This document shows, piece by piece, positions 13,185-59,809 of a stretch of 64,000 nucleotides of DNA. The notes beneath the pieces are model-generated. The model made no database searches. It saw nothing but the letters and a program-made list of their open reading frames with translations, and was not told the DNA's origin. The DNA is taken from positions 186,001 to 250,000 of the forward strand of contig JAIVFI010000042.1 of the NCBI GenBank assembly GCA_025558095.1, written 5' to 3'. Position 1 is the stretch's first letter. Every line of letters begins with the position of its first letter. This stretch comes from Hyaloraphidium curvatum SAG 235-1. Lineage: Eukaryota > Fungi > Monoblepharomycota. A program made the position numbers and the translations under genes.

Positions 13185-15767
13185 ATGAACCACATCGCAA
13201 CCATTCTCTGCGCCGCGCTCGGCGCCGCTCTCCTTGCTTCGGCAGGGGCGGCCGGACCCGGGCCGCCGCTCCCCGTCGCGCCGCTCTCCCCGCTCCCGCT
13301 CTCCCCGCGCTCGATGACATGCAAGCCGTACTCTTACGAGAACGCCACTGACCCGGCGACGGGCGGCCCTGCCTGCGCCGTCACGCAGGGGGTCCAGTGC
13401 GAGTACAGCTTTGCGTGCGCGATCGACACTTGGTTCTGCCCGTTCGAGGGGTGCGGTGACCCCGTGAACCGCCAGCCGCACACCTGCGGTGACTTTCCCC
13501 GCAACCGCACCACCTGCCGCTTCGACAGCAACGGCGTCGTCGGCTCCTCGTGGGCCGCCAACGCCACCGTGGCCGAGGAGAACGGCCGGTGCTTCTACGC
13601 CGGCGGCAAGGGCCTGTATGTCGGCCCTCCCTTCTCGAGGTCTATCTCCTTTGCCATATGGTACGGGGCCTGCAAATCAACGGCCCCGTGCCGGTGGGAC
13701 CTACTCTCGCAGACCGTGAACCAGTTGCGCAAGACGGGCCCCTCGGCGGGCACCTTCGAGGCCTCGCGCATCCTTCACCCCGGGGACCACGGCCGCGGCT
13801 CATTTAGCCCCAGCGAGGTCTGCCTCACCGCAATGCAGTGCCCGCCGATGCTCGGCCTGCTGTCCTCGGGGCCGGAAATCGATTACGGCGGCACCCAGTT
13901 CGCCTGCATACCCACCGACGCGGCATTCAGGGAGGGCATTGTCGTCAAACGAGACGGCCTCGGCAGAGCCGTCTGCCTGACCGACGGGTCGGGGGCGTGC
14001 CTGGTGCTCCCGGGATCATGCTGCGGCGCCATGGACTCCAACTCCTCCTCGTCAAACGTGGCGGCAATCTCTCCGATACGGTGGCCCACGAGGCCATGCA
14101 CGGCGGGGGAGGACTGGTGCGGCCGCGCCCTGGCCGCCGTTGAGGGCCGGTCTTCCTCCTTCCTGCTGCTGGGGTACAACTGCACGCTCACGACGTCGGC
14201 CCCCGCCCCGTACAACGTCACCGCGAACGTTCCGGACCCGAACGCGGGCCCCTGGGTCGTGCAGAGGTACGATAACTACTACTCAGGGCCCACGAGCAAC
14301 TACTCCTTCCTGTACCGCGCGGTCCGCCGCATGGGCAACGGGAGCATCGCCGCCATGGGCTACAGGTCGGTTGGGAGCGACTACGTCACGACCTTCGCGC
14401 TCGGCGACGCCGGCTGCGCCGCCAATCTGGTCAGGACGGCGCCCGCCGGCGTGGCCTATGCCATGCTCCCGTCCTACGACAAGGCCAACAACGACTCGGA
14501 ACTGCTGTGGATCCTCGGGCTGGATCCCAACCGCGCCGCGCCGCAGCCCCCGCCGGATCCTCCGACGCCCCCCGGCCGCGGCAGCTGGACCTGCGTGCAG
14601 CTCTGTAGCGAGGGCGGGAACTGGGCCGTGGTGCGCTATTATGGCGTGGGGGGCGGCGTGCAGTGCCGGGGGAACAATGCTGGGGGCTGCTCGCTCTACC
14701 GCGATTCTGGGTGCACGGATCTGGCCGACGGAGAGTACGCGCCCCATCCCTCTGGCGAGGTCGGGTACGTCTGCAGCCCGCAGGACCAAGCGTCCGGGTG
14801 GTGCGCGCATGCCGCGGCCGCGGTGCTGCCCTGGAACAGCGGTACGGCAGCCTGCGCCCCAACCGAGATCCGGCAGGCCTGCAACGGGACGTGCTCGCCG
14901 TCGGCGACGTGCGTGCGCTCGGGCAGGGAAACCTTCTGTTCGTGCAACGAGGGATTCTTCGGCGACGGGAAGGCGTGCAGCCCCGATCCGTGCCGGACCG
15001 GTAACGGGGGCTGCTCGCCCCAGGCCACCTGCATCCCCTCTGTGGGGGGCTCCGTCGCCTGCACGTGCTGGCCGGGCTACTTCGGTTCCGGGCGGAGCTG
15101 CCTCCCCGATCCCTGCGCCACCAACAACGGCGGGTGCTCGCGGTACGCCCGGTGCAGCCCCGTCTGGCCCTCCGGCAACACCTGCGCGTGCGGAAAGGGG
15201 TACGTCGGCGACGGCCGGCGGTGCATGTGGGACTACTGCGCGCAGGACGGCATCTGCCCCCCGAACGCGGTCTGCTCCCTGGACTCCCAGGGCGCCCCCA
15301 GGTGCTACTGCACGGGGGCTTACACCTCGAACGGCACGCACTGCGTTTCCAAGTGCCTCTACAACAACGGAGGCTGCTCCCGCTACGCCGCGTGCTCCAT
15401 CCGCAACGGCGCCATCGCGTGCGCATGCAAGGCTGCGTACTACGGCAACGGGCGGACGTGCACGGCCAAGGCTGCGGTGAGGCTGGCGCTGACGGCCCCG
15501 GCCACGGTGCGCCGCGGGCGCAGGGCAACGTTCGTGGCCAAAGCCACGAATTCCAAGGGGAAGGCGTTGGCGAGGCTGCAGGTGACGTTCCAGGTCGGGA
15601 GCGGGGCAAAGGTCAAGCGGACGACAGGGACGGCGGGGACATGCTCGTACGTCTACGCGGTGCCGGCCAGGGCGGTGCTCGGGAAGATCGCCGTGAGCGC
15701 CTCTTTCCCGGGGACCTCCACGCTGCTGCCGGCGTCGGCCAGGAAGACAGTGACGATAGCGAGATGA
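13185..15767 (+). CDS. Secreted cysteine-rich protein with tandem EGF-like repeats and a C-terminal basic Ig-like domain
   Basis: Signal peptide MNHIATILCAALGAALLASAGA; about 5 EGF repeats of type C..NNGGCS..A.C......C.C..GY.G.G..C; C-terminal beta-sandwich-like segment (TFVAKATNSKGKAL..VTFQVG...TTG.AG). Confidence 0.8.
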   Translation: MNHIATILCAALGAALLASAGAAGPGPPLPVAPLSPLPLSPRSMTCKPYSYENATDPATGGPACAVTQGVQCEYSFACAIDTWFCPFEGCGDPVNRQPHTCGDFPRNRTTCRFDSNGVVGSSWAANATVAEENGRCFYAGGKGLYVGPPFSRSISFAIWYGACKSTAPCRWDLLSQTVNQLRKTGPSAGTFEASRILHPGDHGRGSFSPSEVCLTAMQCPPMLGLLSSGPEIDYGGTQFACIPTDAAFREGIVVKRDGLGRAVCLTDGSGACLVLPGSCCGAMDSNSSSSNVAAISPIRWPTRPCTAGEDWCGRALAAVEGRSSSFLLLGYNCTLTTSAPAPYNVTANVPDPNAGPWVVQRYDNYYSGPTSNYSFLYRAVRRMGNGSIAAMGYRSVGSDYVTTFALGDAGCAANLVRTAPAGVAYAMLPSYDKANNDSELLWILGLDPNRAAPQPPPDPPTPPGRGSWTCVQLCSEGGNWAVVRYYGVGGGVQCRGNNAGGCSLYRDSGCTDLADGEYAPHPSGEVGYVCSPQDQASGWCAHAAAAVLPWNSGTAACAPTEIRQACNGTCSPSATCVRSGRETFCSCNEGFFGDGKACSPDPCRTGNGGCSPQATCIPSVGGSVACTCWPGYFGSGRSCLPDPCATNNGGCSRYARCSPVWPSGNTCACGKGYVGDGRRCMWDYCAQDGICPPNAVCSLDSQGAPRCYCTGAYTSNGTHCVSKCLYNNGGCSRYAACSIRNGAIACACKAAYYGNGRTCTAKAAVRLALTAPATVRRGRRATFVAKATNSKGKALARLQVTFQVGSGAKVKRTTGTAGTCSYVYAVPARAVLGKIAVSASFPGTSTLLPASARKTVTIAR

Positions 15768-42400: not shown

Positions 42401-44845
42401 TTCTGCAGCTGCCTCGCCACCATCTCCGACCTCCGCCTCGCCCTCTCCGACTCGTCCAGCCTCGCATCGAGCTCGACGACGCGCCGCATGAGCACCTCCT
42501 GCTCCACGCGCTGCCCGTCGCGGAGGTGCAGCCTCCCTTCGAGCTTCCTGATCTCGGCGCGCAAGACACCGGTGTGGCCCTCCTGGTCCTGCGCAATGTC
42601 CATCCACAGCTTGCGCTCCTGCTCGGACTTGTCCTTCTGCTCCCGCAGCGCGCCCGCCTCCTCCTCGGCGTGTGCACGGGCCTGGACGGCCTCGGCAGCC
42701 GCAGCCTCGGCGACCTGTGCGCGCCCGCGCATCTCCACCGCCTGCGTCCTCGCGGCCTCGAGCTCCACGTTGCGTCTCCTCAGCGTGTCCGCCAGCGCCG
42801 CGATCGCCCCCCTCGCCTCCCCGATCCGCCCCCTGGCCTCCTCCACCTTGCCGCGGAGCTCCTCGTTCTCGGCCCTCAACGCCCTGACCCGTCCCTCCAT
42901 CTCCCCCTCCCTCTCCGCCGCCCTGCTCGCCTCCCCCTCCCCCGCCTCGGCACGCGCACGCGCCTCGTCCCTTTCCGCGCGCACGGTCGCCAGCTCCTCC
43001 TCGAGCTGCCCCGCCCTCGCCGCCGCCCTCTCGCGGAGCGAATGCAGCGCCCAGTTGGCCCGCGCGAGCTCCCTTTTCAGCGCCTCCTCCGTCCTGCTGG
43101 GCGCCTCCTCCCGCGCGTTGACTGCCGGTTCCCTCGCGACCGCAGAGGGGCGGGGCATCGCCACCCCCGCCTCCGCAGCCCTGCTCCCGAGCCTGGAGTT
43201 ACCGAGCCGCTCGATCCACGCCTTGCCGCTCGCCACCTCGGCCCTCGCCCTGTCGAGGATCGCGCCCGCCAGCGCCTCCCTGCTCGGCACCAGCGCCCCC
43301 GGTGCCGGGTGCGCCAGGGCGAATAGCACGGCGAGCTGCGGGTCCTCTTCCTCCTCGGCGCGAAGGGCGCCGCGGACGGAGCGGGAGGGCTTGGCGGCGG
43401 GGGGTTCGGCGGGGATGCCGCCGAGGGAGAGGGCCGAGAGCCAGTCGGTGGGGTCGAACTCGGCGGGTTCGTGGGCGGGGGCGGGGGTGGGGGGGAGCCG
43501 GCGCAGGGCGGCGGCGGCCTCGGCGAGCTTCTGCCGATCCCGATCGGGTGAGCAGACGTGCGTCGGGCATGCGACGGGGTTGCGTACCTCGGCCTGGGCG
43601 CGGGCTTCCTTCTCCGCCTGCAACCCGGCGGCCTCCCACCTGGCCTTCCACTCGGCCGCCGCCTTCCTCGCCTCCGCGAGCTCCCTCTCCGCCGCCTCCC
43701 TCCTCCCCCTCTCCCTCCCCGCCTCTTCTTCCCGCACCCTGGCCCGCCCCTCCAGCTCCGATACGAGCTCCCGCGCCTCGGCGGCCGACTCGAGCGCCTC
43801 GCGCCAGTTGTCGGGGAGCCCCTTCGCCAGATCCCTCGCGGCCCTCAGCCGGTCGAACAGCCCCGCGACCATGCGGGCGTCCGTCGCCGCGCGCTCCCGC
43901 AGGCGGGCGAGCTCCTCCCCGAGCTTCGTCGCGACCTCCCTCGCCTGGTCGGCTTCGGAACGAAGCCTGGCCTGTTCCGCGCCGTGGGCTTCCCGCGCGC
44001 TGGCGAGCGACCGCTCGGCGGTGGCGAGCCAGGCGTGCCGGTCGCGCAGCTCGAGGTCGCGCTGGGAGAGGAGCGTGCGGAGGCGCGAGACCTCGGAGGG
44101 CTGCTTCGGAACGGGGGGTGTGAATCGCGTGATCGGAGGGTGATCGCGGGGCCGTAGGTACCTGCGGAGCGGGCTTGGGTTCCTGCGGTTCGGCGGCGTG
44201 ATCGGGCTTCTTGGGGTCGGCGGACTGCCTGTCCGCCTGCTTGCTTGACGGGGAATCGCGCCTGGGGGCCGCGCGATCAAACGCCGCCGCGACATCGCCG
44301 CCCTTGTCCATCGCCAGCTGCCTGGGGGTCTTTCCCGCGTCGTCGGCGGCGTCGGGATCGGCCCCGCGCTCGAGCAGGAACGCGACCACGCCGGGGGAGG
44401 GACGCGGCGCGTCGAGCGCGTGGTGCAGCGGCGTGCGGCCCAAGAGATCGCGGGCGCGGAGGGAGGCGCCGCCCTCGAGGAGCACCCTGACGGCGCCGCC
44501 GTTGCCCCGCAGGCATGCGACCATCAGGGGGGTTGCGTCGGCGTCGACTGCGGCGCGCACGTCGACGCCAGCGGGCGGGTGGTGCGGGAGGTGCGCGAGC
44601 GTCTGGAGCAGCCATGCGGCGCCGCCCAGCCGCTGGTCGGGGTGCAGCCCCTCACGCAGGAGACGCTGCACGAATCTTGGATCCTTGTCGAGCATCAGCA
44701 GCGCGAGCAGGACGGCGGGCCGCGAGCGGTGGTTGCCGGGGTTGATGCCGCCCATGCCCGCCGGCCCGGATCCCGGTGCCCACGGGCCGTTGGCCGCGCC
44801 CGACGCCCGCCGCAGCGACTCGAGCATGCGCCGCGCCGCCCACAT
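39429..44845 (-). CDS. Large ankyrin-repeat + coiled-coil protein (three ORFs joined by splicing; start may be further upstream)
   Basis: Ankyrins ATPLMVACLRG and GRTPLHHA..GADPD. A phase-0 intron from 44161 (GTACC..AAG) joins PAPQ to QPSEV; a phase-0 intron near 42356-42300 (GTGATT..GCAG) joins LVAK to SGPV. Confidence 0.65.
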
Positions 44846-45628
44846 TGTGCCGGGGCCGATCTAAGGTTGCCTGGGGTGTGTGCCGGGGCCGCCTGGGAGA
44901 AGGGCGGATCAGCCGCTGATACGCTTCCCGCCGCGCCGCGCGCCCGCCGCCGCCGCTGCGCCGCCGCCGCCGGCGTCCCGGCCATTTTCGCGCGGCGATA
45001 CGGGCGGCGGCGGCGGCGGCGCGCGCGCATTCGCCCCGCGGCGCAGGGGGGGACACACACCGCTCGCCGCCGTGTCCTCCGCCCGCGCTCGGCTGGCCGG
45101 ACCGAAAATCAGACCCCCGCGTCCGCCCTTTTAAGGCACCCGGAGCCGCGCGGCGCCGGTGGCAACGCGCTCCGGAGGGGGAATGCTCGCGGATCCGGGG
45201 GTCACGAGACAGTCGACGGTCCACGGAGGATCGTCGCTGCACAGCCACCTTGGGGCCGATCTCGAGATCGCGGGACAGCCGCTGGGGGTCCGAGGATGGC
45301 CGAGACAACGGTGCTCGATGGCTCGTGTATGTGCCTGGATGCTGCCTGGGTGAATATGCGGGGGGCAGGCGGGCGCCTGGCGAGGGACGCGGTGTCCCGG
45401 CCCGGCCGCGCAAGACGGAATGACGCGATCGCAACCGCGACCTGCGCGGTCTGAACAGCCGCGGATGCCTTTTCCACGATGCTGGTGAAGCATGAAGAAT
45501 CCAGTGGAGCGAAAGGTGGAACTGGACGGCATCGAGTGACGCGGGATGATCGCGAGATCGGGAATGTCTCGAGAATGCAACGGAGGCCCACTCCGCGAGC
45601 GCTGTCTCGGCTCGCAGCTTCCCAGAAG

Positions 45629-46511
45629 TCAAATTTTGGCCGCCTTCTTCGTCGCCTCGAGCAATGCCGCCGTCTTGTTGTACAGGGCCAATGCCTGCGA
45701 GTGCGCGGCGTTCAGCACCGCCGGCCACAGTAGAGGGCCCAGTCCGGGAGACCGGAGGACCAACCTGACCCTTCTTCATCGACACGATGTACGCCGGCCC
45801 CGCCCTCGCTTTCGGCGCCGTCCGCTCCGCCAGCCTCACCGCCGCCCCCACCACGTCCTCGTCGAGTTCGTCCGCGAACCCGCAGCGGGCCAGCTCCTCC
45901 CCTTTGAACTTCAGGCCGTACATGAAATCCCGCACGGCGGCGGGCCCCATCCTCCGCGCGAGCATCTCCGCGACGTTGGCCTGCATGCCCGCCGGGTCGT
46001 CCGAGGCTTCGAACAGCTTCCACGCGGGGGGCAGGTCGATCTCGTTCATGCAGGCCGTACTGCGGGACGGGTGGGCGACGCGGTAGTCGAAGGCCAGGGC
46101 GAGGCCGACGGCGCCTGCGTAGCAGTGGCCGTTCACGGCGGCGACGGTCGGCATGCGGAAGGCGAGGATGCGGAGGGCGAGCTCCGTGAAGGGGGCCAGG
46201 TAGGCCGGGCCCATCCTCGCGAGCGAAGGCAGATCTGCTCCGTTGCTCGAGATCTTGTTCCGCGCGAATCCCTGGTCTGGCGATCCTGCGACGACGCCGG
46301 CGTCGGCGGCCGCGACCACCAGCGCCGCCGGCGGCCTGCCCTCCCGGTCGTGCACGTCTTCGACGGCGTCCAGCGCGGAGAGCATCGCGCGCATCAGGTT
46401 CGGTGTGAGCGCGCGGGAGGGGGTGGGATCGTGCATCGCGACGAGGAACAGGGGGCCGAGGCGGGAGAGGGTCACGACAGGGGGGGTGCCGAAGAGCTGC
46501 GGGCGGGGCAT
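45629..46511 (-). CDS. Enoyl-CoA delta-isomerase-like crotonase with PTS1-like AKI*
   Basis: SSNGADL, FRMPTVAAVNGHCYAGAVGLALAFDYR, CMNEIDL; an inferred last intron gives ...KKAAKI*. Confidence 0.82.
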
Positions 46512-46732
46512 TGCTGGCGAACTTGCCGAGGAACCGAGCGAGCTGACGGAGCGGGCACGAAGGGGTCCGCCGCGAGGAATGCGTGGCCGTTCGTGGCGGT
46601 GGAACGTGTTTGGCCAGCGACGTCCGCCGCCGAAGCGCGGAACATTCCTCGCGGTCACCGCGGGCGGGATCGAGGGGGACACCCGCGCTCGACCTCCGAC
46701 GGAGGCCGCCGCGAAGAGCACTTCGCTGCACG

Positions 46733-47847
46733 ATGTCGGCGACGGAGCCGCCGTGGGTGGCGGACCTCCGCGGCCGCCCGGGCGCCGTGGCCTGGCTCCG
46801 CTCTTGGGACTCCCTGGAAGACGGCGGGCCCTTCTGGCCCCGAGTGCGCGGGCGGGCGTGTTTCGACGCATACGTTTCGGCGATCGACGGCGATGCGGTC
46901 GACGCCGCGGCGCTCTGCGGACCCTTTGCCGGGGGCAATGGGACAGTCCAAGGCGGGGCGAGCTACGCGCTCCTGTACGAGGCCGCGAAGCAGCTGGCCG
47001 CCTCCACCCTCCCCGGTTCAACGATGCGCCTCTCGTCGACAAAGTACGCGGCGCCGGTTCCCGGGGGATGGCTGCGCGTGACGGCGCGGGTCGTCGGGCG
47101 GAAGGATGGCACCGTGGTGATCGATTCCGCGGTCGGCGCCGACGGGGCCAAGCCGGGGGTGACTACGCTCACGACGTGGAGTAACGCGGCGGAGGATGCG
47201 GGCACCGTGCGGCGAAATGAGGTGCCGGTGAAGGGGATGCTGCCGGCGCTCGAGGCCGAGATCGGGGACGGGAGGGCGCCGAACATCGTCGTGGCCATGG
47301 TGCGGTCGCTGTTCGGGAGCATGCCGGAAAATTTCGGGTACGATGCGCAGGGCATGCGGTTGGTCCGGGCGCGATTTTGGGGCGGCATCCTGATGAGTGA
47401 CGTCTCTATTGGACACTAGGTGGCACGATCTTCGGCATTACCAGAAGCTCGTCAGCCCCGGAAACCTCGTCTACCTCTCCGAGCTGCCCCCCGGTATATC
47501 GAACCCAACCGGAACCATCGACCTGGCCGCCCTCGCGGTGCACGCCGAGTACGTGCCGTCGCTCTCCCGCTTCCACATCATCTGAAACCCCCTTTGCGCG
47601 CAGCTTCACCACCGCAGGCACCACCTGGGAAGCCTACAACAAGCCCACCGCGCACACGAGCATCACCTACGAGCCCACGGCCTTCGCACGCTCGGCGATG
47701 CCGCGGTGGGTCTGCGCGCGCGTCAGGTGCGGGCCGCTGGAGGGGAGGCGGGCGAAAGCCGAGTCGGTGCTGGAAGACGAGGAAGGGAGGGTGCTGGCGA
47801 AGGTGGAGGCGACGGTGGCCGTCGTCGGGGGCGAGTTTAGGCTGTGA
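46733..47847 (+). CDS. Hot-dog-fold thioesterase-like protein (probably double hot-dog), spliced
   Basis: GPFAGGNGTVQGGASYALLYEA, LSSTKYAAPVP, second NPTGTID repeat, SVLEDEEGRVLAKVEATV; ends GGEFRL*. Confidence 0.65.
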
Positions 47848-49154: not shown

Positions 49155-49630
49155 TGCGAAGGTACAGGACGTCTGACATTCGGACAAGGGTATTTTCATT
49201 TTCGGTTCGGAGGCGTGGAGGCGTCGGTCCTCGCGATCGACTCGTGATCGACTCGCGATCGACTCGCGAGTGACTCGCGAGTCACTCGCGAGCGACTCGC
49301 GAGCGACTCGCAAGTGACTCGGCACAGCCACCCTCCTGGGATATATAAAGAGCGGGACATGTAACAGTACAATCTTGATCGCCAGTTGACTCTACGTGCT
49401 CTCCGTGTCGTTCGACCACCGTGCGGAACCCCGCCCGGCCGGATCCTCGTTCTGAGAGCCCTTGGGACGCACCCCGGGAGACATCCCGTAACCTCTTTCC
49501 CCCGGCTACAGTCAAGTATCTTCAGCGCTGTTCGCTTATTCATATTCAGGGCCTATCCGACCCGAAGAGCCGAGCGGGATTCGCGCGCCGGGTTAGAGCT
49601 TCAGGCCCGGTTCCGACCCGGACCGTCGCA
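49155..49630 (+). repeat. 5' LTR (476 bp)
   Basis: TGCGAAGGT...ACCGTCGCA (8/9 terminal inverted repeat); matches 59334-59809 with no differences seen. Confidence 0.97.
49230..49349 (+). promoter_or_regulatory. LTR U3 array of ~8 x 11-bp GACTCGCGA(GT/TC) units followed by TATATAAA
   Basis: 11-nt periodic repeats at 49230-49321; TATATAAA at 49342-49349. Confidence 0.8.
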
Positions 49631-49631
49631 C

Positions 49632-49649
49632 TGGTCCGACCTCCGTGAT
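49632..49649 (+). other. Primer-binding site, 18 nt, tRNA-Tyr type
   Basis: TGGTCCGACCTCCGTGAT, 1 nt after the LTR; its complement ends AGGTCGG-A-CCA (C1:G72 and A73, the eukaryotic tRNA-Tyr acceptor identity). Confidence 0.7.
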
Positions 49650-49797
49650 CCTGCTCTCGGGTCTTCGACACCTCGTTCGACTTCAGTTTCGACTTCGATA
49701 ATCCAAAAACAACTTCGCCTGGCACCGGCGCTTGTCGACTGCCACTCTTTTCTGTCAACCGTATTCCGTCAACCAAGTTCATTCCCCTTCGCCAAAC

Positions 49798-51453
49798 ATG
49801 GACCCCGTTCAAGAAGCCGCCCCTCAGCAGGAGGTTCAGCAGCCTCAGGAAGCTAACGATTTGCAGAACAACCCGCAGGCCCAGGCGATTATCCAAGCTG
49901 CGCAGGCCGCGATCCAGCAAGTCGGCGCCGCCGCCAACGACGTCGCCCAACTCGCCGCCCAGCAAGCCGCCCAGCAAGCCGTCGCCGATCAGCTTGCCGC
50001 TCAGCTCGTGGCGCAACAGACCGCTCAGCAGTTGCCAGCTGCCCAAGTTCAACAGCAAGCCGCCGCCGAGCAGCTTGCAGCGCAGCAGCTCCAGCAGCTC
50101 GCCGCACAGCAGCAGGGTCAGCGGAGCGAGCAAGCCCCGGCTGTCAACGCTGCCGCCGCTGGTCTCCAGCCGCAGCAGTTCGTCGACGCCGTACGGGCCA
50201 TCGTTGGCGCTCAGCCGCCGAACGATGGAAGCACCGGCCTCCCCCAGGCGGATCGCCAGGGCGGAGCCGCCAAGCTCCCGGCTCAGCTGCTGCCTGCTTC
50301 TGTTCAGCCCTTCGATCCCGCTACGCAGGACCCGGAAGACTTCTTCCGCGACCTCACTACGGTTCTCACGGCGTTCGGCTCCATCAACAACCTCGTCAAG
50401 GTCTTCCCGGTCTTCCTTGGGCCTCTGCCGCGCGCAATGTGGCACAACATCACGCCGCAGAACCGCCCTCCGGACTATCCCGCGACGGCCACCTATCCTC
50501 CGGTGACCCAGAACGATGTGCTTGCCTGGCTACGCTACCACTTCGAGCCCCGCGACGCATCGATGCATTATCGCCGGCACTACAACACGATTCAGATGAC
50601 CAACGATGAGACCCTCGACGCCTTCGTTGCCCGCGTATCCCTGGCCGAGACGCGTTTCCTCTCGCACTGCGGCGATCAGCTTCCTACCAGGGAAGTGCAA
50701 GACAGCGTGTACGGCCAGAACCTGCTCTATGGACTGCGCCCGGAGCTACGCGGGAAGGCGCTGGAGCTCCTCGGGGATCACCTCATCAACCGCACTTCCG
50801 TCACCAAGGTCATCGAGAAGATGCGCACCGTCATGCAAGCATCGGGCCCTGCGCAGCCGCGCGACATCCGTTTCCTGGGCCAGAACTCGATTTCGGAGAT
50901 TCCGGCTCTGGTCGGCCAGCACTCGTCTTCGGGCTCCTCCAAGGCGACCGACAAGGCGACGACGGAAGTGCTGCTGGCTCATACGCAGGCTCTCACAAAG
51001 CTGCTGGAGCCTAAGGGAGAGCGCAGGCCCACCGGTGGACCGCCGGGGGAGTCTGCGTTCCGGCCTCCGCGCCGTTTCGTCCCCTTCCAGTCTCGTCGGA
51101 GCCAGCCGTTGCCGCCTTCGGGGCCGAACAGCGACCTCGTCGAGATCAAGGAGCTCATCACCAAGCTGCTGCCGTCGCCTCGCCATCAGGTTCAGGCCGC
51201 GGAGACCAGGTCGAACCCCCCCGCGAGGCCTCCTCCGATCGATCGGCCCCGCCAGCAGCAGGAGCGCCAGGATCGCCGGCCCTTCACCTCGGAGTACCGC
51301 GACCAGAAGCGCTTCCAGCCTCGCCACTGCCATCTCTGTGGCATGGATGGGCATGCTCAGGACGAGTGCTGGGAGTTGGAGAAGAATGCCAACCGCCGCC
51401 CACTCAACTGGAAGTCTCGCCTCGGCAACACCCCTTCGATGCCAAAAAACTAG
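49798..51453 (+). CDS. gag: Gag with Q/A-rich N-terminus and CCHC zinc knuckle
   Basis: MHR-like IQMTNDETLDAFVARV; CHLCGMDGHAQDEC. Confidence 0.93.
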   Translation: MDPVQEAAPQQEVQQPQEANDLQNNPQAQAIIQAAQAAIQQVGAAANDVAQLAAQQAAQQAVADQLAAQLVAQQTAQQLPAAQVQQQAAAEQLAAQQLQQLAAQQQGQRSEQAPAVNAAAAGLQPQQFVDAVRAIVGAQPPNDGSTGLPQADRQGGAAKLPAQLLPASVQPFDPATQDPEDFFRDLTTVLTAFGSINNLVKVFPVFLGPLPRAMWHNITPQNRPPDYPATATYPPVTQNDVLAWLRYHFEPRDASMHYRRHYNTIQMTNDETLDAFVARVSLAETRFLSHCGDQLPTREVQDSVYGQNLLYGLRPELRGKALELLGDHLINRTSVTKVIEKMRTVMQASGPAQPRDIRFLGQNSISEIPALVGQHSSSGSSKATDKATTEVLLAHTQALTKLLEPKGERRPTGGPPGESAFRPPRRFVPFQSRRSQPLPPSGPNSDLVEIKELITKLLPSPRHQVQAAETRSNPPARPPPIDRPRQQQERQDRRPFTSEYRDQKRFQPRHCHLCGMDGHAQDECWELEKNANRRPLNWKSRLGNTPSMPKN

Positions 51454-51491
51454 CTTTGCCCTCAGTGCCGCACGGCCATAGGGGGGCAGAG
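51444..51491 (+). other. -1 programmed ribosomal frameshift signal
   Basis: A_AAA_AAC immediately before the gag TAG; pol is in the -1 frame; downstream stem 51454-51463 pairs with 51482-51491. Confidence 0.85.
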
Positions 51492-54400
51492 ATCCAAGCT
51501 CTTGAACCACATGTGGAACCTCTTCCTGGAACTTCCCCGCTGCCGGACGGCACGGACCCTTCATCTCCTGGCGGATCGCCGGAGTTGTCGGATTCCGCGA
51601 CCGATGAACCGACGGCGGAGGACCACGTTCATCATTGGCCCTTCGGGGGCACGGAGTACATCCTCTTCCTCGAGGCGGAGGCAGCTCGACAGGCCGCCGT
51701 TCGTCAGCAGCGGGAGGCGCTCATGCCGATCGACGAGACCCTGGCCCCGCCGCCGGCAGCGGATTCGGCGTCGCCCGGCTCGGTCGAGGTCGTGGGAAAC
51801 GGTGAACCGGCGGCACAGGATGCGGACGCGGGATCAGCGGATGCACCTATGCACGAGGGCCCGACCGTCCGCGCCGTTCCCGGACCTTTCGAAAGGCCCC
51901 CTCCTCCTTCCGCCTACGCACGACCACCGCTGCCTGGCCCTCGGCCTCGCCCGCGGCCACCTGCTCCGGTCGCCCCTCCGCCGGATCGCTGGACGTGGAC
52001 TTCGCAAGTGCAGTTCCACTATCAGGCGGCACGCGTTTCGGCATGGGTCAACGGCGTGAATACCCCCGCGGCCCTCGTCGACTCCGGTGCCTCAGTGGTG
52101 GCGGTTCGGTCGTCCTTCTTCTGCCGGATCCACCCGTCGCCACCGATCAAACCATGGACACTCGGCACCCTCAGCACGGCCGCGGCCGGCGGAACCATGT
52201 GGGTCCGCGGAGTTGCTAAGATGGACATCCTGGTCGGGAATCAACACTGCGTCATGGACGTCGCCATCATGGACGGTCTCATGGACGACGTGATCCTCGG
52301 CACCCCTTGGCTCTCCGCCCTACGCGTTCAGATGGACTGGGAGACGCCGGTCCTCTATTTCAAGGACGATCCGGAGGGGGTCGTCGTGCCAATGCACATT
52401 GTTGCGCGACCGCTCTTCGGATCACACCTGGTCGCCCCGCTCCATTCAACCACCTCCATCACGGTCTACCCCAACGAGGACGTCTCGATCACCGCTGAGC
52501 TGGCCCCGACGACTCCCTTGGCGACCGTCGTGGAGATGGACTTGACAGGGGTCATCGAGACGCCGAACACTTCGCCGTTCGATCGCCTCTTCATCATCCC
52601 GTCGGCGACGCCCGACAGAGACGGTCGGCTGCCGATTCTCATCCGCAACTACGGGACGACACCGGTCACGATCGGCCCGGGCACCCACCTCGGCCGCTTC
52701 CGCGTGCGGATTCCTGGATTTCTCGCTCCGGAACCGCCCACGTATCTGGCTCCCGCGCAGATCTCGATGCTGGAGCCCGAGCTGCCCCACACCGAACCGG
52801 CCGAATCCACGCTCACGGTCGAGGAGACCATCGATCTGTTCGCGGTGCCCTCGCCGGGATCGATTGGACCACCTCAGCCTCCCGGCGTGGAGCCTCCTCC
52901 GGTCGAGGCTATCGAGCTCAAGATGGACCAAACGATCCTGAGCGAGGGGGACAAACCTCGTTTCCATAAGCTCTGCGACCGCTACCGGGACGTGTTTGGT
53001 CCTTGGATCGGCAAGCTGCGCAACCATCGCTTCCGGATCGACACGGGCGACCTCAAGCCGATCCACCAGATGCCGTACCGGACCCCGTTCCGGCTTCGCG
53101 GGGAAATGGACAAGATCATCGACGACCTGCTCGTGCAGGGCGTAGTCGTCCCCTCGCGAAGCCCCTGGGCCACGCCCTGCATCATGGTGCCAAAAGGGCA
53201 CGGCTCGGGCGAATGGCGCCTGGTGATCGATTACCGGAAGCTCAACGCCGCCACCAAGCGCGACGTCTACCCGATGAAGAACCCAAGCGACACTCTCGCT
53301 CTCCTCAGCGCGGCCAAGGTGTGGAGCGTTTGCGACATCCGCTCCGGCTTTTGGCACGTGGAGGTGGCCGACGAGGACAAGGAAAAGACGGCCTTCACGA
53401 CGCACCGCGGTCTCTACCAGTGGGAGCGGATGGCCATGGGCTTTACCAACGCTCCTGCAACCTTTGCTCGGATCATGGACGAGCTCCTCGCCGGCCTCCA
53501 GTGGTACTGCTTGGTGGTCTTCATCGACGACATCATTATCTTCTCGCAGACGGTCGACGAGCACCTCGTGCACCTGGAGCTCCTCTTTGACCGACTGCGC
53601 GAGGCCGGGATGACTCTGAAGCTGGCCAAATGCAAGTTCTTCCGCCGCGAGGTCAAATACCTCGGGCATTACGTCACCGCCGACGGCCTCAAGGTCGACC
53701 CCGAGAAGACCCGCGCGGTGGACCAGTTCCCCCGCCCAACGACCAAGAAGGAGCTCCAATCGTTTCTCGGCCTCTCCAACTACTATCGCCCCTTCATTGC
53801 CGGCTACGCCAACATTGCCAGCCCGCTCACCCGCCTGACGCAGGACGGCGTCTCGGTCTCTCGGGCCTGGGACGACGCATGCGAGGCCGCCTTCCGTATG
53901 CTAAAGGAACGGCTTACGTCGGCGCCCGTGCTCCGTCGCCCCGACTTTTCCAAGCGCTTCGTCTTGTTCACGGATGCCAGCGATATCGGCCTCGGCGCGG
54001 TGCTCAGCCAGCGGGACTCCGATGGCAAGGAGTACGTCATCGCCTACGCCAGCCGCGCTCTGCAGCCGAACGAGCGCAAGTGGGACACTCGGGAGCGCGA
54101 AGCCCTGGCCGTTGTTTGGGCATGCGAGCATTTCCGGGCGTATTTGATCGGGGACGAGTTTGAGGTGGTCACCGACCATAGCGCCCTCAAATGGCTCTTG
54201 GAGACCTCCAAGCCGGGCCGCCTACAGCGCTGGATCCTCCGGCTCTCGGACTTCAGGTTCCAGATCATCCATCGCTCGGGCAAAGCGAACTCCAACGCCG
54301 ACTTCCTGTCTCGTCAGCTCGTGGCGCCGTCGCCCGACGAGGACGTGCCTATGGGCGACCCCGAGGAAATCTTGGACATCCCTGCCTTTTGGCCCCCAAA

Positions 54401-56501
54401 CCCTCCCGACCCCTTGCCTTTTTCTTCTTTTTCTGGGGGGGGACGGGCGCCCGGATTCCTCTCCGGGAGTGATCTCGGTCAGACTTCCCGTTCTTCGTCA
54501 ACCCCAGTCACCGAGTCAGACTCGGGACGAGCTACTGCGGGTTCCTCAGTCAATTGTGAATCAATGGAGCGAGTGCTGTCTGGCACGGAGTTCCCGGCCA
54601 CGGTTGCCGCAGTGGAGGGAACCCTGTGGAGCGATCCGGGGACCCTGCCCGAGGCTGCGGCACCGGAGACGCAGATCCTCCTGCCGATCCCAACGACGAA
54701 CGCACAGGTCGACCCGGCAGACGTGCCTGAGCGAGACCTGGCGTTCCTTCATCCGGCACTGCTTGAGGTGCTACCCGATGTCGGGGGCATCAGTGCTATT
54801 GACCTTGCCGACGTCAGATCCCGGGATGCCCTGCGCAAAGTGCAAGAAGCCGACGTCGAGACCAGCGCGCTGATCCGCTTCGTGCGAGACGGGGAGCTCC
54901 CTCCCAACGTGAATCTGGCCAAATTCTGCAAGAAGTACGGCGAGCAGTACTTCCTCGCTACGGACGGCGTGCTCTGCCGGCGCGATGTACTCGCGACTGG
55001 TACCCGTCGTATCCCGGTCACCCAGCTCGTGATACCGCACGAGCTGAGGGAGGCCTACCTGCAACGTGCGCACGACGATCCCCTGAGCGGGCACGTCGGG
55101 CGACACCGGGCGTACAGCAATCTGCGGCGCCGCGTATATTGGGTCGGCATGGCGCACGACGTTCGCCGCTGGACGCGAGCCTGCCTTACATGCATGACCC
55201 GGAAGATGCCTTCGGTATCGAACCAGGGCTTACTGAAATCGGTTCCTCTCACAGGTCCCAACGAGGACATCTACATCGACTACATCGGCGAGATCAATCC
55301 GGCCACGCCCCGCGGCAACAAGTACCTTCTCGTCGTCTACGATCCGTTCACTAAATGGGTCGCGGCGTATCCGACTCCGGACCTCTCTGGGCCGACGACG
55401 GCGAAGCTGCTCTATACGCGATGGATTCTCGAGCACGGTCTTCCGAAGCGGATTCACCACGACAACGCCTCGAACCTGGACAACCATTACATGGAGTACC
55501 TGCTCAAGCTACTCGGCATCAACCGGGGCCTGGTCACGGTTGGGCATCCCAGGGCTTCCCTCGCGGAGCGCCCGAACCGGTGGATCATCGACGCCCTGAG
55601 CGCAGCGGTCTCCAAGAACTACCAGACATGGGACGAGGACATCGTGGGGGTCATCTTTGCCTTCCGGACCTCCATCCACGCGACGACCGGCGAAACTCCG
55701 TTCTTTCTGATGCATGGTCGGGATGCTCGTATTCCGCTCGACCTACTTTACGACGAGACCGAGATTCGCGAGCCAGTGCACCTGCGGGCCAGCGACGAGG
55801 AGGACAAGAAGACAGAGGATGAGCGCCGGCGGACCTACGTCGTGGAGCTCGTGGCGCAGCTTCGTGCGGCCTACGACCTGGTGGCCGAGAAGATGGCCGC
55901 AGCGGCGGAGACTCGGAACGCCAAGGCCAACGCTACCCGGCTTCCGATTACCTTCCGCCCCGGCGACCTCGTGCTCATCTGGGGACCAGAACGACCGCGC
56001 AAGGGCGAGCCGGGCAAGTTCGTCTCTCGTTATCTTGGGCCCTACCGCATCGAGGAGTCAGGCCACACCGAGCTCACCTGGAAGTGTAGACACGTCTACG
56101 AGACCGACCACGTCACCACTGTGCATGTGGACCGGCTGGCGCGCTACAAGCCTTGGGAGTCGGCCACCTTCAACGCGCGCTCGTGGAACGCACGCGCCCC
56201 GGAGCTCGCCGCCGGTGAAGAGCTCGATCTCTCGGAACCGGTGAACGAGTTCGAAGAGGAAATCGAGGTCGAGAACGCGCTTGGGAACGAGCAGGAGTAC
56301 ACCGTCGAGGACATCGTCGGCCACGAGGGCCAGGGTCACGGACTCAAGTTCGAGGTCAAGTGGCGGGGCTTCGCTCGCACGACCAAGCTCCCTCTGGACA
56401 TGTTGCACGGCGCCATAGGGATCGTCCGCGCCTATGCCGATCGCGTTGGTCTCCAGCTCCCGACGGGTCTCCCCAGGCGCATGCGGACTCGGCGTCGCTA
56501 G
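51444..56501 (+). CDS. pol: Pol: aspartic protease, RT, RNase H, integrase, chromodomain (intact)
   Basis: ALVDSGAS; RLVIDYRKLN, MGFTNAPATF, FIDD; TDAS...E...TDH; HHCC plus D,D,E; GPY motif; YTVEDIVGH...FEVKWRGF. Confidence 0.97.
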   Translation, partial: KKLALPSVPHGHRGAEIQALEPHVEPLPGTSPLPDGTDPSSPGGSPELSDSATDEPTAEDHVHHWPFGGTEYILFLEAEAARQAAVRQQREALMPIDETLAPPPAADSASPGSVEVVGNGEPAAQDADAGSADAPMHEGPTVRAVPGPFERPPPPSAYARPPLPGPRPRPRPPAPVAPPPDRWTWTSQVQFHYQAARVSAWVNGVNTPAALVDSGASVVAVRSSFFCRIHPSPPIKPWTLGTLSTAAAGGTMWVRGVAKMDILVGNQHCVMDVAIMDGLMDDVILGTPWLSALRVQMDWETPVLYFKDDPEGVVVPMHIVARPLFGSHLVAPLHSTTSITVYPNEDVSITAELAPTTPLATVVEMDLTGVIETPNTSPFDRLFIIPSATPDRDGRLPILIRNYGTTPVTIGPGTHLGRFRVRIPGFLAPEPPTYLAPAQISMLEPELPHTEPAESTLTVEETIDLFAVPSPGSIGPPQPPGVEPPPVEAIELKMDQTILSEGDKPRFHKLCDRYRDVFGPWIGKLRNHRFRIDTGDLKPIHQMPYRTPFRLRGEMDKIIDDLLVQGVVVPSRSPWATPCIMVPKGHGSGEWRLVIDYRKLNAATKRDVYPMKNPSDTLALLSAAKVWSVCDIRSGFWHVEVADEDKEKTAFTTHRGLYQWERMAMGFTNAPATFARIMDELLAGLQWYCLVVFIDDIIIFSQTVDEHLVHLELLFDRLREAGMTLKLAKCKFFRREVKYLGHYVTADGLKVDPEKTRAVDQFPRPTTKKELQSFLGLSNYYRPFIAGYANIASPLTRLTQDGVSVSRAWDDACEAAFRMLKERLTSAPVLRRPDFSKRFVLFTDASDIGLGAVLSQRDSDGKEYVIAYASRALQPNERKWDTREREALAVVWACEHFRAYLIGDEFEVVTDHSALKWLLETSKPGRLQRWILRLSDFRFQIIHRSGKANSNADFLSRQLVAPSPDEDVPMGDPEEILDIPAFWPPNPPDPLPFSSFSGGGRAPGFLSGSDLGQTSRSSSTPVTESDSGRATAGSSVNCESMERVLSGTEFPATVAAVEGTLWSDPGTLPEAAAPETQILLPIPTTNAQVDPADVPERDLAFLHPALLEVLPDVGGISAIDLADVRSRDALRKVQEADVETSALIRFVRDGELPPNVNLAKFCKKYGEQYFLATDGVLCRRDVLATGTRRIPVTQLVIPHELREAYLQRAHDDPLSGHVGRHRAYSNLRRRVYWVGMAHDVRRWTRACLTCMTRKMPSVSNQGLLKSVPLTGPNEDIYIDYIGEINPATPRGNKYLLVVYDPFTKWVAAYPTPDLSGPTTAKLLYTRWILEHGLPKRIHHDNASNLDNHYMEYLLKLLGINRGLVTVGHPRASLAERPNRWIIDALSAAVSKNYQTWDEDIVGVIFAFRTSIHATTGETPFFLMHGRDARIPLDLLYDETEIREPVHLRASDEEDKKTEDERRRTYVVELVAQLRAAYDLVAEKMAAAAETRNAKANATRLPITFRPGDLVLIWGPERPRKGEPGKFVSRYLGPYRIEESGHTELTWKCRHVYETDHVTTVHVDRLARYKPWESATFNARSWNARAPELAAGEELDLSEPVNEFEEEIEVENALGNEQEYTVEDIVGHEGQGHGLKFEVKWRGFARTTKLPLDMLHGAIGIVRAYADRVGLQLPTGLPRRMRTRRR

Positions 56502-56571
56502 TAACACCAACGACGTCTATCCGGTCACAGCACTACCATCTCTGTGCTCCGATCCCCGGCTTTTCACTGAC

Positions 56572-57557
56572 TCAAACCCGACGTACTACCTCGAGCCTAT
56601 CCTCGACCCCCTCGAACGCCAACTTGTGATACCCGGACTGAAAATGCGTGTTCAGATTGCCCAGGAGGCCCTTAGCCTTGTGCTTTACCAGATGGCACCA
56701 CGGGAACGAGCATACCGCCACTTCGCCCTTGGTGGGGCTCCGGTACAGTTCGCCGGCGTACGTTCCGGCAATCTTCCATCGGAGGAAGGAGCCTGCCGGC
56801 ACGGCATCAGGGACCTTCTTCGTCACCCGTTCCGCCTTCAAGCCCCAGACCGGCGACGACTTCTTCATCTGGCACATTCAGTGACGATCAGCGCTTGTGG
56901 GGCGTACTCCCGTCGAGCCGTTCACCTGCGCAATCTGCTCCCGGGCCTCCCCGCGCTGCACCACATGCCCCTCGTCTTTACCTGAAGTTGCCGTTTGGGC
57001 CGTCTGGAAGGCGCTCCCTTGTTCAGTGGCGGCCTCGAAGTCGCCTAAGTGGTCCAGCTCCCAAGAGGGCGCATGAAGCGTGACTGACAGCACGGGGACT
57101 TCGTCGGCCGCCTCGAGCTCCTCCCTCGAGTCCGCCGCCGACTCGCCCTCGCCGACGGAAGGCGCACCCTTCGACGACATCGCCGGCAGGAAGACGCCGG
57201 AGGTCCGGGTTGCGGCCGCGGCCGCGATCGGGTCGTTGCCTCTGGCCCCGCCAGCCTCGCGCAGCTTGGCGGTCCCGCCGGCCTCGCGCAGCTCGGCGAC
57301 GAGCCGACGGAGCACTCGGACCTCGACAACGACGTTCCCAGCCTCTTCGGCCAGCGGCAACATCCCGCGCATGGCGGCCAGACGCACCAGTTGCAGGAAG
57401 CAGTCGACCACGTCGTCCTCCTGGCGCGGCGCTGAGCTCCCGTTCGAGGACCACGCCGCTACGCTCTTACCTTGGTGCACAGCAGGACGTCGAAGGTCGG
57501 CAACCGAACCTCGAACCACGAACTCGGCGGGACGACGTTCGGCAGCTCCGCACTCAT
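56572..57557 (-). CDS. Antisense three-exon accessory gene (~292 aa) with C-terminal BED/C2H2-like zinc finger, inside the retrotransposon
   Basis: Exons 57557-57471, 57420-56926 and 56868-56572. Phase-0 introns of 50 nt (GTAAGA..CCAG) and 57 nt (GTGAAC..CTGAT..CCAG) each remove a stop. Motif CSFPWC-x16-H-x5-H (GNLNTHFQSGYH). Confidence 0.68.
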
Positions 57558-57696
57558 GACAGGCGCGGAGATCCCCCCAGCTCTTCTGGACCCTACGTCG
57601 CGATCCCCCGCGAGCGCTTTCGTCGACGCAATGGCGTACGGCCCTCGCTCGCGCCCCGTCCCCCGTGGCGGGGACTGGTGACCCGGTGTGCGGGCG

Positions 57697-57857
57697 AACT
57701 CGCGGTCGACTCGACTCGCAGTTGACTCGCGGTTGACTCGCGGTTGGCTCGCGGTTGACTCGCAAGTGACTCGCGAGTCACTCGCGAGTCGCTCGCAAGT
57801 CACTCGCGAGCGACTTGCGATGCACTCGCGAGTTGCCTGCGCTTCGCACCATATAAG
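57697..57857. promoter_or_regulatory. Internal array of ~12 x 11-bp LTR-type GACTCGCG repeats plus CATATAAG; putative bidirectional promoter
   Basis: Same unit as the LTR array (gtgactcgcgagtcactcgcgag is shared exactly); lies between the ATG at 57557 (-) and the ATG at 57926 (+). Confidence 0.75.
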
Positions 57858-57925
57858 CGGCGGACCACAGGAGGCCGCGGCCGCGGACTACGCACCCAAC
57901 GTCGACCTCGCCGCTACCGTCTCCC

Positions 57926-59191
57926 ATGGCGACCCCCACGACTGCCGGCCACAACCTGCGGCCCCGCCGGCCGCATGTGGCCACGGCGCCGCCGCCGGCG
58001 ACTGCGCCCGTCGCTGCGTTGCCTGGCGTCGTACCCCCGGACTATCGGTCGGCGCTTGCCTCCCTCTCGACCCGGCTGGACGACCTCCGGGCCGACCTCG
58101 ACGTCAGACACTCCCAGACGACGGCCCACTTGCACAAGGTCGAGCAGGCCGCCTTCTCCGCGGTCATGCCCATCCGCGCAGCCCTCGACGCACTCCACCC
58201 GGTGCTCAACACCCTCGTCAATGTCGGCAACCTGGAGCAGCACGCTCTTGACCGCGTAACGGCGACGCTCGAGCAGCAAGAGGCCCGCCTGGACGCCCAG
58301 ATCCGCCAGCAGCGTGACGAGCTCCAGGTGGTCCTCAGTGGCCGCCACCGCGAACTTGAGTTCGCCGTCACCGCCTTGCGCCGGACCGACGACGCTCGTC
58401 TCGGTGCCATCGAGACGCAGCTCGACCGGCTTGCGTTGGTGCTCGAGGCTCAACGTCAGAACTTCAACGGCATTCTCCTGGTGGACGAAGCTACCATCGA
58501 GGAGTTGAGGGAGTTCGGCTCTTCCCTCGCCGGGCTGGTTGCTCAGACCGGGACCAACCTCGAAACCACCATCGAGACCGTCGTCGAGACCAATCTCGCC
58601 CGTCACAACAATGGCCCCATGGCGGAGTTTGCGGCCGACCTCAAGAGCGTCCTGGCGGCCCATCTGCAGCGATTTGGGTCGGAGCAGCACAAGCAGCTCA
58701 TGCTTTCAGCTCAAGACCACACCACGCTCCTCACGGCCGGCCTGAACGCGCAGCGCGAGCACTTCACCAAGACCGCCGACGAGCAACGGGCCCTCCTGCG
58801 TCGCTTCCTCGGCAATCAAGTGGCTCCCCTGGCGGGGCAAACGACGCCCGCCGTGGTCACCTCCACGCCGGTCGGCCGCGTCAAGGACGAGGACCTCGTC
58901 ACCTCCGACGATGAGGCTGGGGATATGCAACCTCCAGCTCCTCGCCCCGAGAGCGTGTCCAGCAGCGACGCCTCCTCCATCGTCTCGCAGGACGACGGCC
59001 TCTTGGCCGCCCTGTACGACGACATCCCGGCCGCTCCCTACAAGTCGACCATGCCCCCGGTCTACACCCCCTCGGCCGCGGACGGCTCAGCCGTGCATGC
59101 CGCCTTCGCTCTCGGCTTTACCCGCCGGCTCCGCGCCCCGCCGCCGAGCGACGACGAGGCGGACGCCGACGTCGACTTTGAGGACGCCTAA
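57926..59191 (+). CDS. Retrotransposon ORF3: 421-aa helical/coiled-coil protein with N-terminal GHNLRPR motif and acidic tail
   Basis: Intronless ATG ORF ~70 nt after a TATA-like box; GC-ending codons like gag/pol; no signal peptide or TM segment. Confidence 0.85.
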   Translation: MATPTTAGHNLRPRRPHVATAPPPATAPVAALPGVVPPDYRSALASLSTRLDDLRADLDVRHSQTTAHLHKVEQAAFSAVMPIRAALDALHPVLNTLVNVGNLEQHALDRVTATLEQQEARLDAQIRQQRDELQVVLSGRHRELEFAVTALRRTDDARLGAIETQLDRLALVLEAQRQNFNGILLVDEATIEELREFGSSLAGLVAQTGTNLETTIETVVETNLARHNNGPMAEFAADLKSVLAAHLQRFGSEQHKQLMLSAQDHTTLLTAGLNAQREHFTKTADEQRALLRRFLGNQVAPLAGQTTPAVVTSTPVGRVKDEDLVTSDDEAGDMQPPAPRPESVSSSDASSIVSQDDGLLAALYDDIPAAPYKSTMPPVYTPSAADGSAVHAAFALGFTRRLRAPPPSDDEADADVDFEDA

Positions 59192-59322
59192 GCCACCCTT
59201 CGGCCCTACACTCTCCAACATCTGTTGTCTCCACCTCGGCCTTCAACATCTTCTACTGCAAGCATGACGTCACTCCGCGGAGGATCTTCGATTTCGTGGC
59301 GCCGAGGGCGGCGCCTTCTTTT

Positions 59323-59333
59323 GGGTGGGGGCG
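59323..59333 (+). other. Polypurine tract
   Basis: GGGTGGGGGCG directly before the 3' LTR. Confidence 0.7.
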
Positions 59334-59809
59334 TGCGAAGGTACAGGACGTCTGACATTCGGACAAGGGTATTTTCATTTTCGGTTCGGAGGCGTGGAGG
59401 CGTCGGTCCTCGCGATCGACTCGTGATCGACTCGCGATCGACTCGCGAGTGACTCGCGAGTCACTCGCGAGCGACTCGCGAGCGACTCGCAAGTGACTCG
59501 GCACAGCCACCCTCCTGGGATATATAAAGAGCGGGACATGTAACAGTACAATCTTGATCGCCAGTTGACTCTACGTGCTCTCCGTGTCGTTCGACCACCG
59601 TGCGGAACCCCGCCCGGCCGGATCCTCGTTCTGAGAGCCCTTGGGACGCACCCCGGGAGACATCCCGTAACCTCTTTCCCCCGGCTACAGTCAAGTATCT
59701 TCAGCGCTGTTCGCTTATTCATATTCAGGGCCTATCCGACCCGAAGAGCCGAGCGGGATTCGCGCGCCGGGTTAGAGCTTCAGGCCCGGTTCCGACCCGG
59801 ACCGTCGCA
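59334..59809 (+). repeat. 3' LTR (476 bp)
   Basis: Copy of 49155-49630; ORF-track translations inside the two LTRs are identical (offset 10179). Confidence 0.97.

Follow-up and report, generated by a model that had tools for sequence, protein, structure and literature searches.

A Ty3/gypsy retrotransposon of Hyaloraphidium curvatum, a chytrid-like fungus (Monoblepharidomycete), may carry an internal promoter derived from its own long terminal repeats (LTRs), situated between two accessory genes of opposite direction. The element was found in a stretch of 64,000 nucleotides of the assembly GCA_025558095.1 (contig JAIVFI010000042.1, positions 186,001 to 250,000; hereafter the window, with all positions counted from its first letter), where it occupies 10,655 bp (49155-59809). 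Between the end of pol (56501) and the start of the 3′ LTR (59334) lies a region of 2,832 bp (56502-59333), for which a preliminary description, made from the sequence alone, had claimed a 2.8-kb cassette of two head-to-head genes around a copy of the LTR repeats of a retrotransposon. This anatomy was confirmed in the present analysis, with corrections to the repeat motif and to the antisense gene: the element has the complete Ty3/gypsy structure, and the start codons of the antisense gene and of the sense open reading frame, herewith designated ORF3, are the first ATGs leftward and rightward, respectively, of the internal array (for details see Table 1). The array and the TATA box next to it mirror the U3 region of the LTR, and the first ATG on each side opens a coding-like frame, so that the simplest reading is an internal, LTR-derived and probably bidirectional promoter that drives two lineage-specific accessory genes, a proposal that we hold at about even chances.

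The element is complete and very recently inserted. Both LTRs are 476 bp in length with TG..CA ends, are 100% identical to each other and carry the GAGT target-site duplication on their outer sides; the direct TG..CA repeats, the short target-site duplication and the order protease-reverse transcriptase-RNase H-integrase together identify a Ty3/gypsy element (Metaviridae). Using Tandem Repeats Finder, we detected 11-bp arrays at 49230-49321 and 59409-59500, that is, in the U3 region of each LTR (8.4 copies each), and at 57713-57833 between the two accessory genes. The same unit is present in all three arrays as previously noted, but the internal copies number about 13 by hand register instead of about 12. 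The repeat motif is to be corrected: its invariant part is only ACTCGCG(A/G), the full palindrome ACTCGCGAGT being present in only about half of the units. With one mismatch or less, ACTCGCGAGT was found at 17 sites in the window against 3.1 expected, 15 of them inside the three arrays, and CTCGCGAG also at 17 sites against 4.5 expected, 12 of them inside arrays; the excess of motifs over shuffled sequence is wholly due to the three arrays, and the 5 sites of CTCGCGAG outside the element stand at about chance level and thus speak neither for nor against a host regulon.

In comparisons by BLAST and MAFFT, the internal array runs collinear with that of U3, with 81% identity over 90 nt including a 30-nt identical run, and the internal ATATAAG was aligned by MAFFT to the TATA box of the LTR (TATATAAA, at 49342-49349 in the 5′ LTR), the distance from array to TATA being 15 bp in the internal copy versus 20 bp in U3. 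Our proposal is that the enhancer and core promoter in U3 of the element were duplicated, and that the copy, now diverged, is the internal array with its TATA. The regulatory link between the three arrays that had been suggested before fits this organization, and at the level of sequence alone the candidate internal promoter shares the response elements of the LTR in the manner of foamy viruses. Since the internal array is 81% identical to that of U3 while the two LTRs are identical, the module should be older than the current burst and have survived replication. A variant LTR from the sibling copies described below (L002:13162-13495) equals the window LTR outside the array and differs inside it, where nine units are homogenised to a CGATCGA type, so that turnover of the array is the one LTR divergence seen and the array is the part that evolves fast.

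The sense frame of the cassette, ORF3, is supported as a gene by several lines of evidence. Its exact 421-aa sequence is present in the protein collection of NCBI, called on a contig of GCA_025558095.1, and gene calls for it exist at three further places of this assembly, in agreement with the preliminary description of a sense gene; its ATG lies downstream of the internal TATA. The GC content by codon position (0.73/0.47/0.84) resembles that of gag and pol. In a codon log-odds score, for which pol and gag together served as the training set and open reading frames (ORFs) in non-coding frames of gag-pol as the null, ORF3 scored 0.42 versus 0.43 for the gag ORF itself, the null ORFs giving 0.13 or less. 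The predicted product consists of a basic, proline-rich N-terminus, a helical part (residues 38-299) and an acidic disordered tail (residues 300-421, net charge -15). The single-sequence AlphaFold model is weak, with a mean predicted local distance difference test (pLDDT) score of 52.8 and with residues from about 45 to 175 at 65-84. Heptad-like segments occur at about residues 67-117 and 146-186, but the coiled coil claimed previously is an impression from sequence and prediction that no profile supports. The chromatin-tethering also ascribed to ORF3 found no indication: no chromatin-binding domain was detected in Pfam and PDB sequence searches, and the weak chromodomain match of this element belongs to pol.

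ORF3 is an orphan. No homologue outside the element copies was found either in a word-indexed search of 5.8 billion clusters or in a HMMER scan of 1.84 billion representatives, the matches being ORF3 itself and one chimeric gene model of H. curvatum only. Pfam gave sub-threshold noise, the PDB sequence search gave E-values of 0.23 or higher, and Foldseek of the low-confidence model gave nothing. Two candidate identities were rejected: ORF3 is not a detectable gag duplicate, as the two proved dissimilar in a BLASTP comparison with the gag of the element, and it is not envelope-like, as a hydrophobic segment is lacking (the highest Kyte-Doolittle score of any 19-mer being 1.2).

On the opposite strand, the cassette contains what we model, rather than observe, as a gene of three exons with 29 + 165 + 98 codons, encoding a putative protein of about 292 aa. 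The antisense zinc-finger gene of the preliminary description, of which exons 1 and 2 as modelled here are coding-like, is not a single ORF: the long minus-strand ORF ends at a TGA (56880-56878), after which the same frame stays open for 101 codons more, and a C-x4-C-x16-H-x5-H motif in this second stretch (about 56626-56712) is joined to the upstream ORF only when a 57-nt GT..AG intron is removed. The codon log-odds score was 0.32 for exon 2, 0.27 for exon 1 and 0.16 for exon 3 (best null, 0.13), compared with -0.43 for the proposed intron 2 read in frame and -0.31 for the long ORF upstream of 57420, so that the coding signal ends at the proposed splice sites. The GC content by codon position is 0.76/0.51/0.81 over 56881-57420 and 0.58/0.44/0.78 in the stretch past the TGA, and no sense-strand frame looks coding in 56502-57925. 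The two proposed introns of 50 and 57 nt are plausible, because single-intron genes among the neighbouring host genes imply introns of 54-62 nt; gene spans and product lengths of these neighbours imply about 50-65 nt overall [here total lengths and single-intron cases were used, brute-force solving being ambiguous for multi-intron genes]. Within exon 2, a 27-bp tandem duplication (1.9 copies, 57247-57298) duplicates a short peptide with the frame kept. As an origin of this gene, a hAT/BED transposase fragment or a nested transposable element was rejected, no profile being matched and the finger being C-terminal.

From this anatomy we suggest the following mode of expression. The internal array plus TATA would work as an LTR-like, probably bidirectional promoter. 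Rightward, transcription would begin about 40 nt before the ATG of ORF3 and give an unspliced subgenomic mRNA that reaches to the poly(A) site in the 3′ LTR; leftward, the largely palindromic units would serve the antisense direction of the promoter and drive the gene for the protein of about 292 aa, with its acidic middle and its basic C-terminal part containing the CCHH-like motif. The antisense gene would keep its introns while the sense gene is intronless, which fits the established passage of retroelements through a sense RNA intermediate. In other retrotransposons, it is as a rule host factors that bind the repeats of U3. One factor recognising the units both in U3 and in the internal array could switch on the genomic RNA and the accessory transcripts together, and this factor might be a host protein or the antisense product.

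The family is multi-copy and young, and the sibling copies show which parts of the cassette were retained. On contig JAIVFI010000011.1 (about 498.8-542.2 kb; L002-L004), we found three tandem copies of a deletion derivative with a period of 11,079 bp, which lacks the sequence corresponding to about 55,305-57,337 of the window, with a short microhomology at the junction. The derivative lost the integrase C-terminus, the chromodomain-like tail and antisense exons 2-3 save 83 nt; what it retains is the array, antisense exon 1 and, unchanged from the window, ORF3. Of the two ORFs whose state in sibling copies had been proposed as a check, ORF3 is therefore intact in the three tandem siblings (in four copies altogether), but the antisense gene is mostly lost there; the three siblings without most of it indicate that copies can persist and be duplicated without this gene in cis. 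Each tandem unit also includes a spacer of 1,278 bp, and its 5′ LTR is a variant broken at about LTR position 322 by a 1,164-bp insert, across which runs a 402-codon ORF without Pfam match. Segmental duplication may account for the triplication, or else an artefact of the assembly. At the end of contig JAIVFI010000045.1 (L001:1-3591), inverted and direct fragments of the element, 99.8-100% identical, are rearranged in such a way that the C-terminal part of pol stands, inverted, in place of the 5′ end of ORF3 and is joined to ORF3 from its residue 84. As a result of this rearrangement, the annotated hypothetical protein KAI9000422.1 (411 aa) is chimeric, its first 73 residues or so having no similarity to ORF3, and this one gene model of H. 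curvatum is herewith flagged as mis-annotated. An older copy, 98.5-99.4% identical, ends before the cassette. Between the sibling cassettes and the one in the window, 0-3 substitutions and one 1-bp indel were counted; because the sibling copies are at least 99.8% identical, dN/dS and hence selection is not computable.

Several points weigh against the proposal of a bidirectional promoter with two genes. The full cassette was found in the window copy only, leaving one copy by which to judge conservation, and it is from the sequence that we infer an active promoter, the splicing, where transcripts end and whatever the proteins may do. ORF3 could be expressed from a spliced LTR-driven RNA instead, and the palindromic array, which is strongly self-complementary (folding z = -7.9), might play a structural rather than a promoter role. 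As to the antisense gene, no TATA was found on its side of the array, it is unannotated and gave no homologue in the protein search, the score of exon 3 (0.16) is no better than that of the antisense frame of ORF3 (0.18), the intron 2 donor GTGAAC is weak, and GT..AG pairs are common in DNA of 65% GC. The lack of an antisense TATA and of an annotation also favours a reading that we consider doubtful, in which ORF3 is the only gene, with the array and TATA as a duplicated U3 promoter that works in one direction or with expression of ORF3 via splicing, and the antisense gene is a chance frame of 65% GC DNA with a fortuitous Cys/His pattern: long ORFs are common in all frames of the window, ORF3 is annotated, exon 3 scores at the null level, the antisense frame contains an in-frame TGA, and the derivative copies deleted the antisense region and were still duplicated. 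This reading does not account well for exon 2, which over 165 codons scores far above the null maximum with GC contents at the third and second codon positions (0.81 and 0.51) like those of gag and pol, nor for the end of the coding signal at the proposed splice sites, the opening of exon 1 by the first leftward ATG and the lack of any coding-looking sense frame in 56502-57925. A passive cargo or scar appears to us improbable; it would be sequence transduced from the host or another element, or else a recombination product that trapped part of a U3, with ORFs that play no part in the life cycle and an array that acts, if at all, through nucleic-acid structure. LTR elements are known to transduce sequences (discussed in PMC11963269), read-through capture could leave a partial U3 upstream of ORF3, the array folds strongly, and rearrangement or deletion has affected the copies on two further contigs. 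However, neither ORF has a host or foreign homologue in the 1.84 billion representatives or the 5.8 billion clusters: ORF3 matched only itself and copies of the transposable element, antisense exon 2, searched as a region of the 295-aa ORF, matched nothing, not even a gene model of itself, and no paralogue outside transposable elements was found for either. The recently captured ordinary host locus, named in the preliminary description as a refutation, has thus no detectable parent for either gene. In addition, the codons of ORF3 are like those of gag and pol and its frame is intact in four copies, the start codons are the first ATGs on either side of the array, and the divergence of the internal array from U3 next to identical LTRs indicates a module that predates the current burst.

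A more elaborate reading goes beyond the proposed promoter and makes the antisense protein a sequence-specific DNA-binding factor, with a basic CCHH finger and an acidic activation-like region, acting on the ACTCGCG units of all three arrays, with ORF3 as its partner, in an autoregulatory loop (transactivation, anti-silencing or copy-number control). It follows the reading offered in the preliminary description and we regard it as unlikely. For such a circuit speak the units shared by three sites and occurring at about chance level elsewhere in the window, the charge layout of the antisense product, which is like that of transcription factors (-13 in exon 2, +9 in exon 3), and the rarity of its Cys/His pattern, the class C-x2-4-C-x12-18-H-x3-6-H being found only 5 times when the window is translated in six frames (128,000 residues). 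The best match in the PDB sequence search was a Krueppel-like zinc finger, that of KLF5, at a non-significant E-value of 0.42. Precedents are given by Tas of foamy viruses, which acts on LTR and internal promoter (PMC8670036), and by the antisense TRP28 ORFs of Retand, predicted to be DNA-binding (PMC11963269). Against the circuit, exons 2 and 3 matched no Pfam family and no zinc-finger profile even at E-values up to 10, and the structure model of exon 3 is unusable (pLDDT 39.8), leaving a Cys/His pattern without profile or confident model of a C2H2/BED-type finger. The pattern lies in the weakest-scoring exon, past an in-frame stop and dependent on a putative intron, and exons 2-3 are gone from the three sibling copies; ORF3 for its part has no chromatin-binding domain. 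The WCGCGW core of the unit is, moreover, reminiscent of the sites of host fungal factors of the APSES/MBF type. It seems still less probable that a retrotransposon of an early-diverging fungus independently evolved the full regulation of complex retroviruses, with an antisense CCHH regulator and a helical ORF3 expressed from a bidirectional internal promoter and an autoregulatory or anti-silencing loop over three arrays.

Table 1. Features of the H. curvatum retrotransposon and of its accessory cassette (positions in the window)
Feature	Position	Strand	Remarks
5′ LTR	49155-49630	+	476 bp, TG..CA, identical to 3′ LTR
U3 array, 5′ LTR	49230-49321		8 full 11-bp units (GACTCGCGAnn) and partial ninth; TATA box 20 bp downstream
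Presumed gag ORF	49732-51453	+	573 codons; codon usage coding-like
pol ORF	51366-56501	+	1,711 codons; Pfam domains
Antisense exon 3 (proposed)	56575-56868	-	98 aa, net charge +9; stop codon 56574-56572
Intron 2 (proposed)	56869-56925	-	57 nt, GTGAAC..CAG, phase 0; removes in-frame TGA 56880-56878
Antisense exon 2 (proposed)	56926-57420	-	165 aa, net charge -13, coding-like codons
Intron 1 (proposed)	57421-57470	-	50 nt, GTAAGA..CAG; joins frame of exon 1 to exon 2
Antisense exon 1 (proposed)	57471-57557	-	29 aa; ATG 57557-57555, first ATG leftward of array
Internal array	57698-57835		about 13 units of 11 bp by hand register, one 5-bp irregularity
TATA-like ATATAAG	57851-57857	+	15 bp past internal array, 68 bp before ORF3 ATG
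ORF3	57926-59191	+	421 aa, intronless, annotated hypothetical protein; first ATG rightward of array
Polypurine-like tract GGGTGGGGGCG	59323-59333	+	adjoins 3′ LTR
3′ LTR	59334-59809	+	U3 array 59409-59500; TATATAAA at 59521-59528

The Pfam search gave no family for the presumed gag and the following matches for pol: Asp_protease_2 (residues 224-315), RVT_1 (609-769), RT_RNaseH (860-963), Integrase_H2C2 (1223-1281) and rve (1297-1395). At the C-terminus of pol, Pfam Chromo was matched at residues 1645-1670 with an E-value of 0.022 and 15.1 bits against a cut-off of 25.1, over half of the profile, and the local sequence is chromodomain-like by eye. The two ORFs overlap by 88 nt (51366-51453) pol being in the -1 frame, an arrangement that points to -1 frameshifting between presumed gag and pol. 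The purine-rich GGGTGGGGG stands directly before the 3′ LTR, and the 5′ LTR is followed by a stretch starting with TGG, the window being without any tRNA to compare as primer source. The closest pol relatives elsewhere are about 45-53% identical, none of them from H. curvatum and none named as plant Retand. Of the distant pol loci, three were inspected, none of them informative for the cassette. One (L006) is on a contig without LTRs or tandem repeats, and the ORF downstream is unrelated to ORF3. At a metagenomic locus (L005; ENA ERZ25039518 contig_36100), a chromodomain-bearing gag/pol of gypsy type lies between genes for Prim-Pol, DUF5906 (helicase-like) and Pox_A32 ATPase; as judged from the gene table only, this would be a retroelement within a virus-like or polinton-like context.

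The surroundings of the element in the window are ordinary gene-bearing host DNA, including ORFs that match EGF-domain repeats, enoyl-CoA hydratase and an ATG16-like protein (13185-15767; 44652-47042; 9969-12017). In addition, the segment 17931-21861 is very GC-rich (0.72-0.76), with frames of more than 1,100 codons open on both strands and without Pfam match. Eight ORFs of the window were looked up by exact sequence in the protein collection, and none of them was present.

It is chiefly in plants and animals that LTR retrotransposons with extra genes have been described, and hardly any of these accessory genes has an assigned function. The element described here is a compact and apparently active fungal example, in which the accessory genes flank a copy of the element's own enhancer repeats, and it offers a concrete, testable wiring diagram made up of a single motif, its three arrays and two proteins. 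Complex retroviruses are marked by internal promoters and by accessory genes in sense and antisense direction. Should the promoter and either protein prove functional, such features would have arisen outside the retroviruses as well, and the element would be a small model for the control or protection of transcription by the retroelement itself; should they not, it would still represent a well-delimited new family with two orphan ORFs.

The overall architecture is not unprecedented in general. No description of H. curvatum retroelements was found in a literature search. In deltaretroviruses, the pX region encodes Tax and Rex in sense and HBZ in antisense direction, and U3 carries Tax-responsive 21-bp repeats. 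The H. curvatum element is alike in having sense and antisense accessory genes before the 3′ LTR and U3 tandem repeats as a possible regulatory target, but HBZ starts in the 3′ LTR and not in an internal array, the host is an animal, and there is no homology. In the VANDAL transposons of Arabidopsis, the VANC anti-silencing proteins encoded by the element target its own tandem motifs; the likeness is in idea only, since VANDAL is a DNA transposon with another protein family, and neither ORF of the H. curvatum cassette matched Pfam.

Similar in its layout is Retand, a Ty3/gypsy element of the plant Tat lineage, which has a long region between pol and the 3′ LTR, antisense ORFs predicted to be DNA-binding and often tandem arrays in the same place, together with recently active copies with identical LTRs and non-autonomous deletion derivatives (PMC11963269, where antisense retroviral genes are also mentioned). 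Retand differs in being a plant element, not a chromovirus, with a TRP28 domain in its antisense ORFs (PMC11963269); the antisense pieces of the H. curvatum element matched no Pfam family. In contrast to Retand, the H. curvatum element lives in an early-diverging fungus, has a chromodomain-like pol tail, two orphan ORFs and an extra sense ORF, and its internal repeats are the units of the LTR U3, followed by a TATA. In foamy viruses, an internal promoter is co-regulated with the LTR by Tas (PMC8670036); the likeness is a second promoter upstream of accessory genes at the 3′ end, with response elements shared with the LTR. These are, however, vertebrate retroviruses, with an internal promoter within env and with a proven function of Tas, and without sequence similarity to the present element, in which promoter and transactivator are hypothetical and one gene is antisense. 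As an analogy only for the H. curvatum array, the vertebrate CGCG element TCTCGCGAGA drives bidirectional transcription (PMC6192621) and is bound by the BEN domain of BANP (PMC10206803). Both have the palindromic CTCGCGAG core, but the vertebrate element works as single sites in TATA-less CpG-island promoters, whereas the H. curvatum units form 11-bp tandem arrays with a TATA on the sense side and are non-palindromic in about half of the cases; no BEN domain or other such match was found in the element's proteins. In sequence, the H. curvatum element is related to none of these systems. What is particular here is the combination of an early-diverging fungal host, a chromodomain-like integrase tail, two orphan genes and internal repeats that are the enhancer units of the element's own LTR.

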